Virus record (IMG/VR): IMGVR_UViG_3300024999_000029
Span: 248,001 to 312,000 of that record
Reading direction: 5' to 3' (one strand)
DNA length: 64,000 nt
Shown: positions 5,885 to 42,438 of the stretch, piece after piece
Position numbering within the stretch: position 1 is the stretch's first letter
How the letters are laid out: each line of letters begins with the position of its first letter
The notes under the pieces: generated by a model
Seen by the model: only the letters and a program-made list of their open reading frames with translations
Database searches by the model: none
What the model was told of the DNA's origin: nothing
Translations under genes and position numbers: made by a program

Positions 5885-6205
5885 ATGACTAAAGCAGAAC
5901 AGCAAAAACAATGGGACGTTAGAGTAAGTGAATTTAAGGCTAGTGGTCAAAGCCAAGCTGCATGGTGCAAAGCCCAAAATATTAATCTTCGCACATTCAA
6001 TTACTGGTTTGTAAAATCTAAAAAAACTGTTTCGCCATCAAGAAAACCATCAAATTGGATATCCTTAAAAGCCCGTGAACGAGAAGAGAATCCGAGGGAT
6101 TCTGTCTTTAAAGTAAAAATAGGCCAGGCAGCTATTGAGGTAAAGCCTAATTTTGATTCTGTGCTTCTTTTAAACATTGTGAAAGTTCTTAGTACTTTAT
6201 GCTAA
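5885..6205 (+). CDS. tnpA: IS66 accessory protein TnpA
   Basis: W...V..FKASGQSQAAWCK HTH pattern; first IS66 ORF. Confidence 0.9.
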   Translation: MTKAEQQKQWDVRVSEFKASGQSQAAWCKAQNINLRTFNYWFVKSKKTVSPSRKPSNWISLKAREREENPRDSVFKVKIGQAAIEVKPNFDSVLLLNIVKVLSTLC

Positions 6206-6555
6206 ACAAGATTTCCGTAGAGCAGGTATATTTAGCCTGCGGAAGCACTGATATGAGGAAATCAATTGACGGATTAGCAGCTATAGTGCAGGAGGGATTT
6301 TTCTTAGATCCTTTTTCATCTTGTCTATTTGTGTTCTGCAATAAATACCGGAACAAACTGAAAATTCTTAAATGGGAACATAACGGCTTCTGGTTATATT
6401 ATCGAAGGCTTGAAAAAGGAGTTTTTCAATGGCCTAAAGAGAACACTGTATCCACTATGCCAATTAACATTAGGGAGTTAAATTGGCTATTGGATGGATT
6501 GTCATTAGACCAACATCTTGCACACAAAAAAGTATCAGCAAATGCAGTAATATGA
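6199..6555 (+). CDS. tnpB: IS66 accessory protein TnpB
   Basis: VYLACGSTDMRKSIDGL...LFVFCNK...KILKWE.NGFWLYYRRLE.G.F.WP signature. Confidence 0.95.
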   Translation: MLNKISVEQVYLACGSTDMRKSIDGLAAIVQEGFFLDPFSSCLFVFCNKYRNKLKILKWEHNGFWLYYRRLEKGVFQWPKENTVSTMPINIRELNWLLDGLSLDQHLAHKKVSANAVI

Positions 6556-6634
6556 ATACTTTCAAGAAGAAAAAACTTCTAGAAATATCACGAATTTTGT
6601 AGTCAAAATACGTGAGAAATGATATAATAAACGC

Positions 6635-8218
6635 ATGGAAAACACAGTAAATTCAACAGTTACAATAGAAAAGCTACAAGAAGAAAATGAAATTCTTCAT
6701 CAGAAAAATTCACTTCTTCAACAAGAAAAAGCGGAACTAGCAGCCAAGCTAAATTGGTTTGAAGAACAGTTCCGTTTGAATCAACATTGGCGATTCGCAG
6801 CTTCTAGTGAAAAGACAGACCCTGAACAAATTTCACTTTTTAATGAGTCTGAGGTTGAAGCAAAGCCTGATGCGCCTGAACCTACTGTTGAAGAAATCAC
6901 ATATAAACGTCGTAAAAGCAAGGGCCACAGAGAAGAAATGCTTAAAGACCTTCCTATAGAGGTTATAGAGTACCGTCTTTTAGAAGATGAAAAAGTCTGC
7001 GATTGTTGCAGCGGCGAACTTCATGAAATGAGTATTGAGATAAGAAAAGAACTTAAAATTACGCCTGCACAAGTAAGCGTTGTAGAACATAGAAAATGTG
7101 TATATGCCTGCCGTAAATGTGAACAGAATGAAATAAAAACGCCTATCAAAACCGCATCAATGCCAAGGCCTGCAATACCAGGAAGTATAGCATCATCATC
7201 GGCAATAGCCCATATAATGACGGAAAAGTTTGTTAAAGGATTGCCACTTTACCGCCAAGAACAGGACTGGAAGCGTATGGGCGTGGAGATATCCCGCCAA
7301 ACAATGTCTAATTGGATGATCCAGAGTTCTGATAGGTGGCTACGACTAATTTATGAAAGAATGCATGAGCATCTTATGAAAAGGGACATCTTGCATGCCG
7401 ATGAAACCACATTGCAGGTACTGAATGAAGCTGGAAGGCCAGCTGATTCGACCTCATACATGTGGTTGTACCGAACTGGGCGAGAAGGATCTCCTATTGT
7501 ACTTTATGATTATCAAACAACTCGGGCAGGCAAGCATCCCAAAAAATTTCTCGAAGGTTTTAAAGGTTACTTGAATACAGATGGATATTCAGGCTATAAT
7601 GACATGTCTGGAATTATCAACGTTGGCTGTTGGGCTCATGCTCGACGCGGGTTTACTGATGCTTTAAAAGCAATGCCACCTAAAAAGGATGATAAACCCA
7701 CTGCCACCGAAGAAGGATTAGCATTTTGTAACAAGCTATTTGAAATAGAAAGAGGCTTGCATGATGTAACAGTAGAAGAAAGATATGAAGGCCGCCTAAA
7801 TAAAAGTCGTCCAATATTAGAAAAATTCAAGGAATGGCTTAAATATCAGCGCCCGAGAGTTACTCCGAAAAGTGCATTGGGTAAGGCAATTCAATACTGT
7901 CTAAACCAGTGGGATAAACTGGGGTCATTTATGTTGGATGGAAGGCTAGAAATTGATAACAATCGTAGTGAAAGGTCGATTAAACCTTTTGTAATCGGCA
8001 GAAAAAACTGGATATTCTCAAATAGTTCGAAAGGAGCTACTTCTAGTGCTACAATTTATAGCGTTGTTGAAACTGCTAAAGAAAACGGGTTGAATCCATT
8101 TATATACTTGATGTATCTTTTAGAAAGACTGCCCAATATGGACATCAAGGATAAAGATGCCTTGGATAAGCTTATGCCATGGTCGGATAGTTTACCTTCT
8201 GCTTGTAGAGTTAAATAA
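6635..8218 (+). CDS. tnpC: IS66 DDE transposase TnpC
   Basis: Leucine zipper, zinc finger, LHADETT, DGYSGY, CWAHARR and IDNNRSERSIKP motifs. Confidence 0.95.
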   Translation: MENTVNSTVTIEKLQEENEILHQKNSLLQQEKAELAAKLNWFEEQFRLNQHWRFAASSEKTDPEQISLFNESEVEAKPDAPEPTVEEITYKRRKSKGHREEMLKDLPIEVIEYRLLEDEKVCDCCSGELHEMSIEIRKELKITPAQVSVVEHRKCVYACRKCEQNEIKTPIKTASMPRPAIPGSIASSSAIAHIMTEKFVKGLPLYRQEQDWKRMGVEISRQTMSNWMIQSSDRWLRLIYERMHEHLMKRDILHADETTLQVLNEAGRPADSTSYMWLYRTGREGSPIVLYDYQTTRAGKHPKKFLEGFKGYLNTDGYSGYNDMSGIINVGCWAHARRGFTDALKAMPPKKDDKPTATEEGLAFCNKLFEIERGLHDVTVEERYEGRLNKSRPILEKFKEWLKYQRPRVTPKSALGKAIQYCLNQWDKLGSFMLDGRLEIDNNRSERSIKPFVIGRKNWIFSNSSKGATSSATIYSVVETAKENGLNPFIYLMYLLERLPNMDIKDKDALDKLMPWSDSLPSACRVK

Positions 8219-31349: not shown

Positions 31350-32933
31350 ATGGGATTAATTAGTACAGAGGTAATAGTAAAATGGGGAACAAGTAATAAA
31401 AAATGGTATGAAAATAAAGGATATAGTTATACAAAAATAGGCAGTGAATTTGAAGTAAAGGTAGAAGATTTAAGTAATGGTAGTAGTACAAAAGTTGATT
31501 GTAAATGTGATGGTTGTGGAAAAGATTTAAACAATATTATATGGTATGATTACAAAAAACAAGTTAATGACGATGGAAAATACTACTGCCAGAGATGCTC
31601 AAATAAATTATTTGGAAACAAAAAGATGAATGAGACAATAATAAAAAACAGCAAATCATTTGAACAATGGTGCATAGAGAATGACAAACAAGATATTCTT
31701 AATAGGTGGGATTATGAATTAAATGATAATATAAAACCAAATGAAATATGTTTTAGTACACATAAAAAATATTATTTTAAATGCCCACAAGAAATACACG
31801 AAAGCGAATTAAAAAACATATGTGGTTTTACAACTGGTAATAATAAAATGATATGTAATAAATGTAATAGTTTTGCGCAGTGGTGTTTAGATAATCATAA
31901 AGAATATATTTTAGATTTATGGGACTATGATAAAAATAATAAAACTCCATATGATATTTCATATGGAACTAAATTAAAACATTATTTCAAATGCCCAAGA
32001 AATATACACGAATCAGAATTTAAAAATATAAATTCTTTCACATCTGGATATAACAATATACAATGTAATAAATGCAATTCTTTTTCACAATTTGGCATTG
32101 ACAATATTTGTGAAGATTTTCTTGAAAAGTATTGGGATTGGGAATTAAATACTGTAAATCCTTGGGATATTTCTAAATGTGCAAATGAACCCAAAGTGTG
32201 GATTAAATGCCAGAATTCAGAAAAGGAATATCATAATAGTTATGATATAGTTCCAAATAGTTTTACAGGACAAAATCAGAGGTGTCCCTATTGTAATAAT
32301 AAACATGGTAAAGTTCATTTACTAGATTCTTTGGGTACATTGTATCCAGAAGTGTTAGATATGTGGTCAGATAAAAATGGAAAAACGCCATATGAATATT
32401 CTTCGTGGAGCAGTCAAGAAGCATATTGGAAGTGTTTAGATGGGCATGAAGATTATAAAAGAAAAATATCAGAATCAAATGCAACAAATTTTCGTTGTCC
32501 AAAATGTACAGAAGAACGCACGGAAAGTTTATTATCTGAGAAGGTTAAATTATATTTAAATGAAATAGGATATGTAATTTTAGGTGAAAGAAATTGCAAT
32601 ATAATTGCCAAAAACCCCAAAACAAAACGAAGTTTGCCCTATGATATTGAAGTAGCAGATTTAAAATTGATTTGCGAAATTCATGGGAAACAGCACTATG
32701 TCATTACGGGCTATACAATACAAACCGCAAAACATAATAACACCACACCAGAATACGAATTACATTATCAAAAATTGAAAGACAGATATAAACGTATCTT
32801 TGCTAAAAAGCAAGGATATTTTTATTTGGAGATTCCTTATTGGACTGACGATAAGGATGAAACTTGGAAGCAATTAATTGATGAAAAAATTAATGAAATT
32901 TTAAATAATCAAAATATAAAAGAAGTGGTTTAA
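31350..32933 (+). CDS. Free-standing zinc-ribbon / EDxHD-like putative homing endonuclease
   Basis: Several zinc-ribbon repeats; LPYDIE...ICEIHGKQHY...D..K...GYFYLEIPYW nuclease; paralog of 8338 and 46802. Confidence 0.8.
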   Translation: MGLISTEVIVKWGTSNKKWYENKGYSYTKIGSEFEVKVEDLSNGSSTKVDCKCDGCGKDLNNIIWYDYKKQVNDDGKYYCQRCSNKLFGNKKMNETIIKNSKSFEQWCIENDKQDILNRWDYELNDNIKPNEICFSTHKKYYFKCPQEIHESELKNICGFTTGNNKMICNKCNSFAQWCLDNHKEYILDLWDYDKNNKTPYDISYGTKLKHYFKCPRNIHESEFKNINSFTSGYNNIQCNKCNSFSQFGIDNICEDFLEKYWDWELNTVNPWDISKCANEPKVWIKCQNSEKEYHNSYDIVPNSFTGQNQRCPYCNNKHGKVHLLDSLGTLYPEVLDMWSDKNGKTPYEYSSWSSQEAYWKCLDGHEDYKRKISESNATNFRCPKCTEERTESLLSEKVKLYLNEIGYVILGERNCNIIAKNPKTKRSLPYDIEVADLKLICEIHGKQHYVITGYTIQTAKHNNTTPEYELHYQKLKDRYKRIFAKKQGYFYLEIPYWTDDKDETWKQLIDEKINEILNNQNIKEVV

Positions 32934-36686: not shown

Positions 36687-36842
36687 GTGCTTATCATTTT
36701 AGCTACGCTGCTAATAATATTTAATAGTTGGGTTATATTTTTCGTGTTGAAAAAGCATATTGATAAAAGATTTAATGTTGCTTTAGATAAAGTAGAAACG
36801 ACAAATGAACTTTTGGTAATGCCTAATTTAAAAAATAATTAG
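36687..36842 (+). CDS. 51-aa single-TM membrane protein
   Basis: GTG start 2 nt after the previous stop; hydrophobic first 21 aa, then KKH. Confidence 0.5.
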   Translation: MLIILATLLIIFNSWVIFFVLKKHIDKRFNVALDKVETTNELLVMPNLKNN

Positions 36843-36862
36843 TAAAGGGTGAAATTGATTAT

Positions 36863-37231
36863 GTGCTTATGAACAATTTAAGAAATTCTATTAAAGACAA
36901 ACAGGAATATATTGAGAATCTAAATAATCAAAAATTTGGACTGCGAATTAAATTCATGTATTCTATGGAAAGGGATGAAAATTGCTGGATAGAAGTACCT
37001 ACAGGAGTTGAGGTTTTGACGAATGGACATGTTTTTATATGCTATACAGATAGCAAAGATGAAATTCGAGTTCGTCATATGAATCAAGCGCAGAATAAAT
37101 CAAATAAGATTAAGATGCATGAAGAAAAAATTAGATTTAATGATTGGTTCAAATGTTTTCAATGGCTTAAAAGTTCTCACGCATACAATACAAAACTTAA
37201 GAAAGATATTTTTGATTTGTTGAAAAAGTAA
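36863..37231 (+). CDS. Hypothetical protein (weak paralog of 37734 and 55795)
   Basis: ..H.NQAQN....KMH motif resembles RN.AQN....YH in the paralogs. Confidence 0.5.
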   Translation: MLMNNLRNSIKDKQEYIENLNNQKFGLRIKFMYSMERDENCWIEVPTGVEVLTNGHVFICYTDSKDEIRVRHMNQAQNKSNKIKMHEEKIRFNDWFKCFQWLKSSHAYNTKLKKDIFDLLKK

Positions 37232-37263
37232 GATTAAAAATATAAAAGTATAATAACATTCTC

Positions 37264-37293
37264 TTGACATATTGGTATTTTTTATGATATATT
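37264..37293 (+). promoter_or_regulatory. SigA-type promoter upstream of the agr-like cassette
   Basis: TTGACA at 37264, then TGA-TATATT extended -10 (18-bp spacer). Confidence 0.5.
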
Positions 37294-37324
37294 TAAAATA
37301 AAAATATGTCGGGAGAATCTAGAG

Positions 37325-37750
37325 ATGAGAAAAATCAAATTTAGCAAATGGTCAATGTTGACATTAGTTGCTGTAGGAATTGTTACATGTAGTTTATTAT
37401 ATTATTCTGTAGTTTTCATTAAAGATAGACAATTAGAATTTATTAGTACTGATGGATTTAAGCTTCTTGGAATGATATTTCTAATTTTTTGGATTTTATT
37501 ATTTTGCACTATACTTGTTTTTAAAAATTATGAATTATTGAAAAGGGTATTTGTTTTAACAGAAAAAAACAATGAATTAATCCAAGAAAATAATAATTTA
37601 TTGAAACAAGTAATAGCACATAATAACAACCACGTACAACAATGCGAATATCAATATGACAACATCGTTCGCTCCAATATGGAAGTTAAAGAAATGATAG
37701 TAGATTCATCTATTGATTATCGGAGGACGAACGATGTTGTTGAGAAATAA
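37325..37750 (+). CDS. Two-TM membrane protein with cytoplasmic coiled coil
   Basis: Two hydrophobic segments followed by an N/Q/E-rich heptad region. Confidence 0.6.
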   Translation: MRKIKFSKWSMLTLVAVGIVTCSLLYYSVVFIKDRQLEFISTDGFKLLGMIFLIFWILLFCTILVFKNYELLKRVFVLTEKNNELIQENNNLLKQVIAHNNNHVQQCEYQYDNIVRSNMEVKEMIVDSSIDYRRTNDVVEK

Positions 37751-38066
37751 GATTAATTGGATTGATACTAATTCATTCAAAAAGAATGAAGGATATATCA
37801 ATAAACTTTTAAAATTTTATAAGTTTGAAGAGAATAAAGATTATAAATTAATATATAATGGTTATGGAGACTATGATTTACTTATAACTTGGAATAGAAA
37901 AACTTATAAAATTCAGATAGATGAAGAATCTCAATGTTATAATTTGCTTGCTAGAAATGAAGCAAATAATATTAAAAAAAAAGAAAGATACCATTTTTTA
38001 GAATCTTTTCACGGAGATGATTTAATTTTAAAAATTATAAAACATATTAAAAGTCGAGAGGTTTAA
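37734..38066 (+). CDS. Hypothetical protein, paralog of 55795-56067
   Basis: GGAGG SD favours the ATG at 37734; YG..D.L.T..R.TYK.Q...CY.LL.RN...YH shared. Confidence 0.6.
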   Translation: MLLRNKINWIDTNSFKKNEGYINKLLKFYKFEENKDYKLIYNGYGDYDLLITWNRKTYKIQIDEESQCYNLLARNEANNIKKKERYHFLESFHGDDLILKIIKHIKSREV

Positions 38067-38067
38067 A

Positions 38068-38514
38068 ATGGAAACAATAATTAAAGAATTTGTATTATTT
38101 AATTTAATAGAAAATTTATTTATTGTTTTATTTTTCTTGATGTTTAATAAAATTAAAGAAAACCCAATGATTATAATAGTTCATGTGTTTATGTTAAGTT
38201 CCCTTAATACAATTTTAAAAGTATTGTTTTCAGGTTCTATATTAATGCAATTATTTGGAATAATAGTTATTATAATATATTTTACAAGTATATATCATGT
38301 TAAAATTTCACATAGCATAATAACCGTTATAATTTCATTTTCTATTTTATTAGTATCAGAGGCAATCATAGTAATATTTTATTTAAATATTACTATGATT
38401 GATATGTCAAAAATGTCAAATGATTTTAATAAGTTTTTATGGTTTATTCCAATTAGAATTTTGGAATATATTTCATTATATATTTTGTACTTAATAAAAA
38501 ATAAAATGAGGTGA
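38068..38514 (+). CDS. Polytopic membrane protein resembling an AgrC-type sensor module without kinase
   Basis: About five hydrophobic segments in 148 aa; no HisKA or HATPase motifs; next to the peptide ORF and agrB. Confidence 0.5.
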   Translation: METIIKEFVLFNLIENLFIVLFFLMFNKIKENPMIIIVHVFMLSSLNTILKVLFSGSILMQLFGIIVIIIYFTSIYHVKISHSIITVIISFSILLVSEAIIVIFYLNITMIDMSKMSNDFNKFLWFIPIRILEYISLYILYLIKNKMR

Positions 38515-38519
38515 TATTA

Positions 38520-38570
38520 ATGATGATTAGCACTGAGAAATGGTGGTTTGGAGATATTAAAAGAAGGTAA
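38520..38570 (+). CDS. 16-aa peptide MMISTEKWWFGDIKRR, candidate AgrD-like substrate
   Basis: GAGGTG SD 6 nt before the ATG; followed by a terminator; immediately upstream of agrB. Confidence 0.6.
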   Translation: MMISTEKWWFGDIKRR

Positions 38571-38588
38571 TTTAAAAACACATTTACT

Positions 38589-38617
38589 AGGAGTAGATAA
38601 AAATCTACTCCTTTTTT
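38589..38617 (+). terminator. Intrinsic terminator between the peptide ORF and agrB
   Basis: Perfect 10-bp stem AGGAGTAGAT/ATCTACTCCT, AAAA loop, T run. Confidence 0.85.
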
Positions 38618-38648
38618 GTGTTCAATTTTATTTTAAGGATGATGGTAT

Positions 38649-39218
38649 TTGTTAGATAATATATCAGAAAAGTTTATAAATTGGCTTATAAAAATAAAAA
38701 TTCTTAAGCAAGAACAATACTCAGATTGGGATTATTGGTTTAGGATTTTTTTATTTAATTCTATAGTTGTTTTTTCTTTATTAACAATAAATATATTGTT
38801 AGGCAGTTGGATTCAGTTAATTATAATTAGTATAGTAGTAAATGTTTTACGAATGTATAGTGGAGGTTTCCATGCTCCACAAGGTAAATTAGAATATTGT
38901 GTTCTGTTAACAATTCCCTTAGTTACAATTGCATCTTTCATTGCAAAGTATCTTCAATTATATCCATTGCAATTATTCATGGTTGCAGTTTTTTTAGGTA
39001 TTCTTATAATCAGAAAAATTCCATTAATATCAGAAGAAGAAAAAGAAAATAAGTCAGATAAATATTTTAGAGATAAATATATTTATAATTTTTTAATATT
39101 TTACAGTATTAGTTGTTTGGCAATAATGATAGATTCAAATATATGCAATATTATTTCAAGCGCAATAAGCATGGGAATTATATTAGTTGCATTAGCAATG
39201 AAAAGTTCAACAAAATAA
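38649..39218 (+). CDS. agrB: Accessory gene regulator B (AgrB) family membrane peptidase
   Basis: LRMYSGGFHA...C signature with the catalytic His and Cys, multiple TM helices, 189 aa. Confidence 0.88.
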   Translation: MLDNISEKFINWLIKIKILKQEQYSDWDYWFRIFLFNSIVVFSLLTINILLGSWIQLIIISIVVNVLRMYSGGFHAPQGKLEYCVLLTIPLVTIASFIAKYLQLYPLQLFMVAVFLGILIIRKIPLISEEEKENKSDKYFRDKYIYNFLIFYSISCLAIMIDSNICNIISSAISMGIILVALAMKSSTK

Positions 39219-39348
39219 AAGTATGATTTTATGGGAAGAAAAGAAAAATCTTCCCTTATACCTCTCAAATAATTAAAGAAAGGAATGAAATAAAGATACG
39301 TTTTTAATTATAGAAACGTATTAATTTAAATTGAGAGGATGATAAAAA

Positions 39349-39684
39349 ATGGGTAATTTCCATGCAGGAACGCATTATTGTGGTGCAATTCTTAAATCAA
39401 CAGATAATTATATTTATGACCCAGTTACAAATCAAATAACTACTGGTGTAAATAGTCAAATTTTTTACTTAGAAGACCCAAGAACTGGTGAGACAACTAT
39501 TGCAAGGGTATTTCTTTTTACTCCAATCGGGAGCGATATAAATTTCGATCTAAACAATAATTCAAATAGTAGACTTAAATGCCAAGATAGTATACCTAAC
39601 GGAATCGAAAATGAAATGTTTTTAAGTTCATTTAAAGTTGGTAGTTTGGCAAACAGTATATTTGAATTCTATTGTGTCGTTTAG
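39349..39684 (+). CDS. Hypothetical protein
   Basis: GAGAGG SD, 111-aa ORF. Confidence 0.5.
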   Translation: MGNFHAGTHYCGAILKSTDNYIYDPVTNQITTGVNSQIFYLEDPRTGETTIARVFLFTPIGSDINFDLNNNSNSRLKCQDSIPNGIENEMFLSSFKVGSLANSIFEFYCVV

Positions 39685-39702
39685 AAAGGAGAAGTGAAAT
39701 AA

Positions 39703-42438
39703 ATGCCTTATATTGGTACAAAATATGGAAGTGGAAGTAGTGGTAGTTCTTCTTCAAATACTTCAACAACTTATATATCTTCAGGTACAAAAATAGCTCC
39801 AACAATTACATATAACAATGGTTTAGGAACAGTTACTATAGGTGATGGAACATATAGACTTTTTCATACTACAAATTATACAGGAGTTATATCTGAACAT
39901 GTTATATCTGGTGCAACTTTCCCTATAACAGAACATATCACAACTTATATTTGTTCTGATTATAATAGTGGAACTCCTATAATTCGTACGATTACAGATT
40001 CATCTCAATTTAATTGGTCTAATATATGTCCTATTTATACAGTAACCAGAGATGGAGATAACTTATCTTGGGTCGATTGGGACTCGCCCAGCAATGGTTT
40101 ACCTAACAAGATTCATGATCGTTTAATACGTACTGATAGATTTTCAAGAGAATCTGGATTAAGCATTGGAGAATCTAGTGTTCCAATAGCACATACTATA
40201 ATTGTATCGGCAGGTACAATTTGGCAAGGTGTTTATAAAAACTCAATGGATTCAGTTGATTCATCTATTGATATAGTTAAAATGCTATATACTGATGGTA
40301 CTGGAAATTGGATTGATAGTTTTATAACTCAATATAATAACACACAATATGATACAGGATTGGGATTAGCTACTCTTACAGATGGTAATTATGCAGTAAA
40401 TTGGATATTTAGAATGATAGGTAATACTAAAGAAATTACTGTATTTTTGGGTGATGGGGATTTTGATTTAAATACAGCAAAAGCGTCTCAATTGCCTAAT
40501 AATATTCCTGCATCAATGTCTACTAATGGTATGCTTATAGGTCGTATTATTGTTCTAAAAGGTGCGGATACAGCAACTCAAATAGATAGTGCATTTGTAA
40601 CAAAGTTCGCTGCTAGTACTGTAACAAGTCATAGTGGATTGACAGAAATTGAAGGTGGAGATGCACTTGTAGGACACTATTATCATTCAGATCAAGAAAT
40701 TAATACTGATGATGATGTTGAATTTGCTTCAGTAACAACAAATGATTATAGAAGTTTGGCTGATGATTTACATTTAAACGCAGATGTTGGCTATGATATT
40801 ATGGTTCATGACAATATTATTCCTTCTTTAAACAATTCTAAAACATTGGGTGAATCAGGCTTAGTGTATGCTGAAACATTTACACGAAAAGTAACTTCTG
40901 ATGATGATTTATCATTAGATGCTTTAACTGGTAAAAATATTGTAATTAAGAAAAGTGTTTTACCAGATTTGACAAATACTCACAGTATAGGTTCTTCCAC
41001 AAAAGTTATTAAAGAAGTTTTTACAGAGAAGGTTACTTCTGATGTTGATTTAATATTAGGTTCAGCTATTGGTTCTGATATTATTTTAAGAAATGGCAAT
41101 GTGGATGCTGGAATAATTACAGAAACAGGCAATTGGGGAATTGGCAATATTAATCCTACTAAAAAACTTGAAATAACTGGTGATGTATTAATTGATGGTG
41201 ACTTGAGTGTTGATGGAACGGTTACACAGGTAGACGTTGTTAATCTTGACGTTACAAATAAAAATATAAACTTAGCTGTAACAGATACTCCTACAGATGC
41301 ACTAGCAAATGGTGGAGGTATTGTTTTAAAAGGAACAACCGATAAAACTATATTATGGGATAATTCTAATGTTGAATGGGATATTTCTGATGGATTAGAT
41401 GTTGATGGCATAGTTAAAGCAAATGGAACTACTAGTGATGGTAGTACTAATATATTTATTGGTAAAGATTCTCTTGGCGCTGATGTATTTAAAGTAGATA
41501 CTGATGGTAAAGTTACTGCTTCGGTCATTTCACCATCAATAGATAGTACAACAGGTGTACAAATAACCAAAGCTGATAAAATAACGCCAATCATTAATGT
41601 TGATACTACTAATGAAAGAGTAGAGATCAAAGGTGCTTCTGCTTATGGTATAACACAGTTTATTGGGAATGGATTAGACGCAGAATCTTCAATTGGCTTT
41701 AAGGATTCTACTGATATAAATGATGAAGCTTGGGTTATTGGTAAGAATGTAGGTTTGAGTAATACAACAGGCAGATTTGGTATATTTTATTTAAATGGTG
41801 AAAAATTAGTTATTACAACTGATGGGAATATTGGAGTGGGAATTGGAGAGCCTGATGACAGTGCAATTTTAGATTTAACGAGTACAAGTAAAGGATTTCT
41901 TTGTCCTAGAGTAACCAAAGCTCAACGACTGTTAATAACTCCGGTTGAAGGATTAGAAGTATTTGATACTACCGATAGTGGAAAATATTGTTATTCCTCA
42001 GGCAGATGGATACAAATAAGTGGTTTAGCTCAACTTACGGTTTATAAAACTGTAGATGCTTTCATTCCAGATAATACCGATATCCCATTCGTAACTGAAA
42101 TTAACTACAATATGGGAACAGTTACGTCCCCTTCAATTCCACTTAAAGCAAATAAGACCTACCGTGTCCATGCATACGTGCAAATAGATGGGGATGGTGC
42201 CGCCGCTGGTGCAAGGTTTGCATTTGTAAACTCTTCCGATAACAGTGCTATCAGTGGTTTAAAACAAGGGTTAGTTTACACAACTACAACTACTGGACAT
42301 GCTAGTTCACAACCAGTAGTAGGAGGATTGTATAGACCTACGAGTGATATATCAATAAAGCTAAGAGTTATATCAAGTTCTGGTACACCTAAGTTAAAGT
42401 ACGATACATTCCGAATTGAGATCCAGCAAATAGACTAA
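39703..42438 (+). CDS. Long tail-fibre-like protein
   Basis: 911 aa; fibre-shaft motifs GNWGIG..NP..KLEI.G and SAILDL.STSKGFL.PR.T..QR; C1q-like C-terminus. Confidence 0.65.
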   Translation: MPYIGTKYGSGSSGSSSSNTSTTYISSGTKIAPTITYNNGLGTVTIGDGTYRLFHTTNYTGVISEHVISGATFPITEHITTYICSDYNSGTPIIRTITDSSQFNWSNICPIYTVTRDGDNLSWVDWDSPSNGLPNKIHDRLIRTDRFSRESGLSIGESSVPIAHTIIVSAGTIWQGVYKNSMDSVDSSIDIVKMLYTDGTGNWIDSFITQYNNTQYDTGLGLATLTDGNYAVNWIFRMIGNTKEITVFLGDGDFDLNTAKASQLPNNIPASMSTNGMLIGRIIVLKGADTATQIDSAFVTKFAASTVTSHSGLTEIEGGDALVGHYYHSDQEINTDDDVEFASVTTNDYRSLADDLHLNADVGYDIMVHDNIIPSLNNSKTLGESGLVYAETFTRKVTSDDDLSLDALTGKNIVIKKSVLPDLTNTHSIGSSTKVIKEVFTEKVTSDVDLILGSAIGSDIILRNGNVDAGIITETGNWGIGNINPTKKLEITGDVLIDGDLSVDGTVTQVDVVNLDVTNKNINLAVTDTPTDALANGGGIVLKGTTDKTILWDNSNVEWDISDGLDVDGIVKANGTTSDGSTNIFIGKDSLGADVFKVDTDGKVTASVISPSIDSTTGVQITKADKITPIINVDTTNERVEIKGASAYGITQFIGNGLDAESSIGFKDSTDINDEAWVIGKNVGLSNTTGRFGIFYLNGEKLVITTDGNIGVGIGEPDDSAILDLTSTSKGFLCPRVTKAQRLLITPVEGLEVFDTTDSGKYCYSSGRWIQISGLAQLTVYKTVDAFIPDNTDIPFVTEINYNMGTVTSPSIPLKANKTYRVHAYVQIDGDGAAAGARFAFVNSSDNSAISGLKQGLVYTTTTTGHASSQPVVGGLYRPTSDISIKLRVISSSGTPKLKYDTFRIEIQQID

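Follow-up and report, generated by a model that had tools for sequence, protein, structure and literature searches.

Organization of the locus

The window, by which we mean the whole 64,000-nucleotide stretch of DNA that was analyzed, is part of the 349,050-bp viral contig IMGVR_UViG_3300024999_000029 from a groundwater sample. It has a G+C content of about 30% and encodes tail proteins, a minor tail protein, an integrase, an antirepressor and an IS66 element. Within it lies a set of five consecutive genes, which are listed in Table 1 together with the associated signals: u2, u1, a gene for a membrane protein with five predicted helices, a 16-residue peptide gene, and a gene for an AgrB-family membrane peptidase. 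The cassette sequence is identical in contigs from four public DNA runs in two studies and in a second sample (locus L027), so it is not an assembly error.

Table 1. Features of the AgrB-containing module (positions in the window).
Position	Strand	Feature	Description
37264..37293	+	Promoter-like site	TTGACA, 18 nt, TATATT, with TG upstream; ahead of the module
37325..37750	+	u2	141 aa; two predicted TM segments and a helical/coiled-coil tail
37734..38066	+	u1	110 aa; soluble alpha/beta protein
38068..38514	+	Membrane protein gene	148 aa; five helices in the AlphaFold model
38508..38514	+	Ribosome-binding site of the peptide gene	GAGGTGA, 5 nt upstream of the peptide gene; contains the TGA stop codon of the membrane gene
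38520..38570	+	Peptide gene	16 aa, MMISTEKWWFGDIKRR; core K7-W-W-F-G11, basic tail D-I-K-R-R; different frame from the membrane gene
38589..38618	+	Intrinsic terminator	AGGAGTAGAT-AAAA-ATCTACTCCT plus T6; 10-bp stem, 4-nt loop
38649..39218	+	AgrB-family gene	189 aa; TTG start; His75, Cys84
39233..39255	+	Closing hairpin	GGGAAGA-N9-TCTTCCC; possible terminator, weak T run

The promoter-like site is the best sigma-70 match in the region, with 11 of 12 positions, but is a consensus match only. The terminator is one of only two terminator-like sites in 3.4 kb, against 0.5 expected from shuffled sequences. The closing hairpin was not called by the same consensus scan; in L007, a co-occurring relative of the window locus, AGGAAGA...TCTTCCT is found at the same place, with compensatory changes.

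The AgrB gene product is a clear member of PF04647 (E=4.1e-19, 69.1 bits against a cut-off of 23), with residues 6-182 covering positions 1-183 of the 185-position profile. His75 and Cys84, which correspond to the catalytic H77 and C84 of S. aureus, align with GGFHA...C of the AgrB of phage phiCDHM1 and are invariant, together with R68 and P125, in nine AgrBs of the module; in two relatives, L017 and L018, however, Asp takes the place of the His. The TTG start codon is confirmed by homologues. No solved AgrB structure was found in the PDB copy searched. The other four proteins match no curated family.

An earlier note, made from the sequence alone, had described a membrane protein, a small ORF led by a Shine-Dalgarno sequence, a terminator and an AgrB with intact His/Cys motif, without a conventional 40-50-aa agrD nearby. 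This observation is confirmed in every element, the only correction being to the coordinates of the small ORF, for which those in Table 1 apply. The small ORF reads ATG ATG ATT AGC ACT GAG AAA TGG TGG TTT GGA GAT ATT AAA AGA AGG TAA.

Conservation of the small open reading frame

Word-indexed searches found two diverged relatives each of AgrB and of the membrane protein, from the same aquifer project. Both loci carry, at the same place, a ribosome-binding site, a small ORF (MKTNKWFVGDIKRK in L007 and MKTWYGIINKR in L001), a hairpin, and AgrB. A profile search of 1.84 billion representative proteins then found 48 members of the membrane-protein family, all of 139-179 aa and none carrying a kinase. 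We read the context of eleven more members, and every one shows the membrane gene, a small ORF led by a ribosome-binding site (or an in-frame fusion), and AgrB. The same order is therefore present in 14 of 14 loci examined, the window and 13 other phage-like loci, although their membrane proteins are as distant as a profile E of 2e-5, which places the arrangement far beyond chance. The small ORFs encode 11-22 aa or are fused in frame, and GGTG/GGAGG sites equivalent to the ribosome-binding site of the window precede the peptide ATG in all loci. Two loci, L018 and L019, carry two tandem peptide genes, as is common for peptide precursors. Between close relatives the changes are mostly synonymous: the peptide genes of L001 and L014 differ by four synonymous codon changes and one Tyr-to-Phe change, which is the signature of a translated, selected ORF.

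Twelve of the 13 intergenic gaps that were folded hold a hairpin between peptide gene and AgrB, followed by a T-rich run (weak in L017). The stems are unrelated in sequence between distant loci, so that the structure rather than the sequence is conserved. Because tandem Trp codons followed 18 nt later by a terminator resemble trp-type leaders, we considered whether the small ORF could be a Trp-sensing leader peptide that controls AgrB by attenuation. This is very unlikely: Trp is absent from six family peptides, for example MKKIVKTIINNKKILFGIITRR, MKIGIGGVVRK and MKGFLGEIKRK, no conserved antiterminator fold was found, the stop codon lies 18-27 nt before the hairpin, and the amino-acid motif itself is conserved.

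No AgrD-like ORF of 40-50 aa lies downstream of AgrB in the window or in eight related loci. Immediately downstream of AgrB, the ORF MILWEEKKNLPLYLSNN (starting at 39223) was considered as an AgrD and rejected, since it overlaps the closing hairpin and has a stop at codon 4 in L007. A TTG-initiated ORF at 38548-38655 was likewise rejected because it spans the terminator.

Peptide motif and possible ring chemistry

In total, 24 peptides were collected. Aligned on an invariant Gly, they read K(-4)-x-aromatic/hydrophobic-hydrophobic-G(0)-x-[IV]-x-[KR]-[KR]. Lys is found at -4 in 18 of 24, and Lys or Arg at -4 or -5 in 23 of 24; one peptide, from locus L013, lacks the upstream Lys. A basic residue is found at +4 in 20 of 24 and at +5 in 23 of 24. 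The tail after the Gly is five residues long in most members and ends in Lys or Arg in 24 of 24. None of the peptides contains Cys, 12 have no Ser, Thr or Cys before the Gly, and 6 have none at all.

Apart from their position next to agrB, the peptides fail every defining feature of AgrD, the precursor of cyclic lactone autoinducers. In place of an N-terminal amphipathic leader of about 20-25 aa, the window peptide has six residues before the core, and seven family members are 11-mers starting with MK. A Cys (or Ser) nucleophile five residues before the cleavage site is not conserved, and the short basic tail replaces an acidic recognition tail of about 14 aa. Four family peptides of 21-22 aa matched no curated AgrD model, with no NCBIfam hit at E<=10, the 16-mer of the window being too short for this search. 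Even their adjacency to agrB differs in that they lie upstream of it, in most loci with an intervening hairpin.

The earlier note had proposed that Ser or Thr in the window peptide closes a lactone ring (S/T-EKWW-F), AgrB removing the charged tail. The window peptide does have Ser4 and Thr5, the peptides of L007, L001 and L014 have Thr3, and Ser-lactone AIPs occur in staphylococci. However, the residues taken as the nucleophile are not conserved, as exemplified by the peptide of locus L016, MMIREKFWVGEIKRK, which is the closest in form to that of the window and belongs to those without Ser, Thr or Cys. Moreover, the ring size from Thr would vary from 4 to 7 residues. The Ser/Thr lactone therefore cannot be the general chemistry of the family, and this reading is very unlikely. 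An amine-closed ring (a Lys lactam or a head-to-tail ring) or a linear product is more likely, but this is inference.

Relationship of the peptide to the predicted five-helix protein

In 11 of the 24 peptides, the peptide is fused in frame to the C-terminus of the membrane protein. This raises the possibility that the peptide is essentially a detachable C-terminal tail of that protein, from a split or fused gene, and that AgrB is a maturation protease trimming it, so that no diffusible signal is made. The predicted topology, inferred from loop charges, would place both this C-terminus and the AgrB active site on the cytoplasmic side. On the other hand, the fused forms keep the internal Met, preceded by GG-E/D/N codons that are the ribosome-binding site read in frame, which argues for separate initiation, and about one third of fusions is what random relative frames would give. 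In the window, three stops block read-through, and the only slippery site (A AAA AAT, 38496-38502) runs straight into a TAA in the -1 frame, so that fusion by read-through or by a -1 frameshift was rejected. The tandem peptide genes in L018 also speak against a tail, and we regard this explanation as unlikely.

AlphaFold models the membrane protein as a confident five-helix bundle with a mean pLDDT of 95.7. Searches with it found no Pfam, PHROG, NCBIfam or PADLOC family and no PDB fold match, and a search of BFVD returned only uncharacterized phage proteins. The Atlas structure search lists membrane domains of AgrC/NatK-type kinases (TM 0.78) and SpoIIGA as structural neighbors, not of the protein itself but of a close feature-neighbor. 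An hhalign comparison with a profile of the phiCDHM1 AgrC sensor (the AgrC N-terminus) gave a colinear alignment of 133 columns with E=0.0017 but a probability of only 15.6%, whereas the AgrB control gave 11 columns, E=0.72 and 0.07%. The link to the AgrC sensor domain is thus weak, and we treat it as a lead, not a result.

Upstream genes and allelic divergence

The module is larger than membrane gene, peptide and AgrB. Homologues of u2 sit in the same position in all 11 loci that have upstream DNA, and u1 is conserved likewise, giving a five-gene unit, u2-u1-membrane protein-peptide-AgrB. For u2, Pfam showed no consistent family across 11 homologues and did not support a weak PADLOC hit to SLATT (E=0.005); the idea that u2 is a kinase DHp-like domain was rejected because its partly conserved His is Tyr in the window. 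For u1, AlphaFold gave a high-confidence model (pLDDT 86.5) without an informative PDB match, there was no Pfam, PHROG or NCBIfam hit, and the Atlas gave no named family. Neighboring genes in the related loci are phage-like: integrases, endolysins, a holin, and tail proteins of the SPbeta type.

Against L007, DNA identity is 79-99% from 36744 to 38046, mostly 95-99% apart from an indel-bearing stretch between u3 and u2, and at the protein level u2 is 100% and u1 98% identical. Exactly at the start of the membrane gene, identity falls to 37-65% and stays there through AgrB. It recovers to only about 80% over the next gene and falls again in the tail-fibre-like gene. Assembly contigs in two runs break at 38045-38054, which fits co-existing variants that share the flank and differ in the cassette. 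The pattern is reminiscent of agr specificity groups, in which AgrB, AgrD and the AgrC sensor vary together. The right boundary is not sharp, however, so the pattern could also be ordinary phage mosaicism, and only two alleles share the near-identical flank. A metagenome scan with u1 found only the window allele, the identical copy L027, the L007-type allele, and one short contig of 29% identity (L029) with no DNA match to the window.

A variable unit of peptide and membrane protein, tandem peptide genes, and a precursor-terminator-enzyme layout are all typical of bacteriocin/RiPP operons, and a bacteriocin-like or toxin peptide with the membrane protein as immunity protein or exporter would account for the allelic diversity as toxin-immunity pairs. 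Yet cores of 5-10 residues are very short for a membrane-active toxin, no ABC transporter or other RiPP enzyme was found in the ORFs scanned, and AgrB is known only from signaling peptides, which makes this explanation unlikely.

No match was found among the 50,697 phage records of INPHARED, searched by DNA and by protein with AgrB, with the AgrB of a further locus (L020) and with u1. IMG/VR, searched with alignments of AgrB and of the membrane protein and with a motif pattern, returned only the source contig, and a clade-specific AgrB DNA motif gave no hits in GTDB genomes.

Proposed function

We consider it somewhat more likely than not that the region from the membrane gene to AgrB is the variable core of a self-contained phage accessory module in which the peptide is the dedicated, leaderless substrate of AgrB. 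What the analysis shows is the gene set and its linkage, that the peptide gene is real and under selection, its coupling to the membrane gene, the motif, the hairpin in 12 of 13 gaps, and the sharp divergence of the three-gene unit next to a conserved flank. The rest is inferred, including any endopeptidase or cyclase activity of AgrB on the peptide: nothing shows that AgrB touches it, the case rests on comparative genomics alone, and none of the listed RNA runs holds the region. In this view, the aromatic/hydrophobic core and basic tail would hold the peptide at the cytoplasmic membrane face in place of the amphipathic AgrD leader, and AgrB (Cys84/His75) would remove the basic tail at or next to the invariant Gly through an acyl-enzyme. 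As the family has no Cys and often no Ser/Thr, the acyl-enzyme would have to be resolved by water or by an amine, either the N-terminus or the conserved Lys four residues upstream, the latter giving a five-residue K-x-x-x-G lactam the size of an AIP ring. The predicted five-helix protein would be the specific membrane partner of the peptide, most likely a kinase-less, AgrC-sensor-like receptor, or alternatively would export or present the peptide, and the leaky terminator would keep peptide in excess over AgrB. The output could be phage-phage signaling, host manipulation or exclusion.

The interpretation given in the earlier note is thus partly supported. A phage-borne, bona fide AgrB, a leaderless peptide gene linked to it, the absence of a canonical agrD nearby, and a terminator that fits peptide being made in excess of enzyme all hold; the proposed Ser/Thr chemistry is not supported, and the role of the membrane protein as an obligate, co-varying partner, the in-frame fusions and the two upstream genes had been missed. 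Its suggestions of phage communication analogous to arbitrium and of interference with host quorum sensing remain hypotheses. In a version of the latter, the phage AgrB would act on the host's own AgrD, and the peptide would work only with the membrane protein, for example as a small regulatory or tail peptide. The terminator does place the peptide in the upstream transcription unit with the membrane protein, the peptide has no AgrD features, and phiCDHM1 carries agr genes thought to interact with host signaling (PMC4124054). However, AgrB is adjacent in 14 of 14 loci and diverges together with the peptide and the membrane protein rather than staying conserved, and AgrB enzymes are specific for their cognate AgrD; we consider this reading possible but unlikely.

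A more far-reaching reading, which is speculative and on present evidence unlikely, is a Cys-independent branch of AgrB chemistry in which a leaderless precursor of 11-24 aa is turned into the Lys-to-Gly lactam, or another amide-closed or linear peptide, that is sensed by a kinase-less, AgrC-like five-helix receptor signaling through u2 and u1. The result would be phage 'pherotypes', a new, self-contained phage-phage communication system carried by huge and SPbeta-like phages.

AgrB enzymes are known only with AgrD precursors that carry a leader, a Cys/Ser nucleophile and an acidic tail, three precursor features that this cassette lacks. If AgrB processes these peptides, this would widen the chemistry of a much-studied enzyme family and give a minimal substrate of 11 residues for mechanistic work, define a previously undescribed five-gene phage module with a new membrane-protein family, and offer a candidate peptide signaling system in phages other than arbitrium, with allele swapping that looks like specificity groups. 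Literature searches found no description of this module or of Cys-less mini-precursors next to AgrB.

Comparison with related systems

As in the staphylococcal and clostridial agr systems (AgrB-AgrD-AgrC-AgrA), a small peptide gene sits next to a gene for an AgrB-family enzyme with the catalytic His and Cys, a multi-pass membrane protein is encoded alongside, and the three diverge together while neighboring genes stay conserved. Here, however, the peptide gene lies upstream of AgrB, behind a terminator, and the membrane protein has no kinase domain. No AgrC-type histidine kinase (HATPase_c_5) or AgrA (LytTR) regulator was found in 54 window ORFs scanned or in the called genes of the related loci, and the two unrelated genes u2 and u1 take the remaining places.

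Phage-borne agr genes are already known from the Clostridioides difficile phage phiCDHM1 (agrC-agrB-agrD; PMC4124054; HG531805), where AgrB is also placed in an accessory region with the membrane sensor upstream. In contrast to the present module, phiCDHM1 has a 37-aa AgrD with a leader (MKFFGGVAIAIAFISANTTSVWYINQPKMPKSLKKKL) downstream of AgrB and a full 453-aa AgrC kinase, and its AgrB shows only 28% identity over 81 residues. The homodetic cyclopeptide AIPs of Ruminiclostridium cellulolyticum show that AgrB-derived signals can end up closed by an amide bond rather than a thiolactone (PMC8251862), but that route needs an N-terminal Cys (thiolactone followed by an S-to-N shift), whereas with the Cys-less peptides an amine would have to attack the acyl-enzyme directly.

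Arbitrium (AimP/AimR) of SPbeta-like phages likewise has a phage-encoded short peptide. In the present case neither a signal-peptide precursor nor a TPR receptor was seen among the Pfam hits in the window, a search that included no dedicated AimR model, maturation would be by an intramembrane AgrB, not by secretion and extracellular proteases, and there is no functional evidence for a role in the lysis-lysogeny decision. Several of the related loci do sit in SPbeta-like phage genomes, next to YomU/V/W/N homologues.

In the AgrBs of L017 and L018, two related loci carrying the module, the catalytic His is replaced by Asp (RGSDAS instead of GGxHA), whereas the Cys is kept, and the proteins are about 40 aa longer. 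L018, and also L019, another related locus, carries two tandem peptide genes (MKKIVKTIINNKKILFGIITRR and MKKIINVILNSKKILFGLVSRR), each with its own ribosome-binding site, ahead of a single hairpin and AgrB. For u2, the first conserved gene of the module, PADLOC gave a weak hit to a SLATT-type 2-TM effector model (RTasSLATT, E=0.005), which was not confirmed by Pfam scans of 11 homologues.

Assembly contigs of two independent runs end or begin exactly where identity to the allele of L007, a co-occurring relative, collapses, which fits strain-level cassette replacement within the community. The 911-aa tail-fibre-like gene just downstream is itself hypervariable against L007, with 24-48% DNA identity. 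In the same groundwater runs, many related contigs at 50-1000x word depth lie on 39270-40200, which suggests a swarm of related phages with different fibres.

Coordinates of additional features in the window and in related loci
Feature	Sequence	Position
IS66-family element	window	5885-8218
DDE_Tnp_IS66 transposase	window	6635-8218
DUF4379 zinc-finger protein	window	31350-32933
u2	window	37325-37750
Contig ends at identity collapse	window	~38045-38054
Tail-fibre-like gene	window	39703-42438
Region compared with tail-fibre-like gene	L007	3176-4348
AgrB with Asp for His	L017	6672-7394
AgrB with Asp for His	L018	6743-7435
Tandem peptide genes	L018	6467-6640

An IS66-family element sits inside the phage genome and comprises a TnpB_IS66 ORF (E=1.8e-39) and a DDE_Tnp_IS66 transposase (E=1.8e-99). 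An integrase (Phage_integrase, E=7e-23) and an antirepressor (ANT/P22_AR_N) are present in the window, so this 349-kb phage may be temperate. DUF4379 zinc-finger proteins recur in the window, with two further ORFs besides the one listed, and next to the module in L018.
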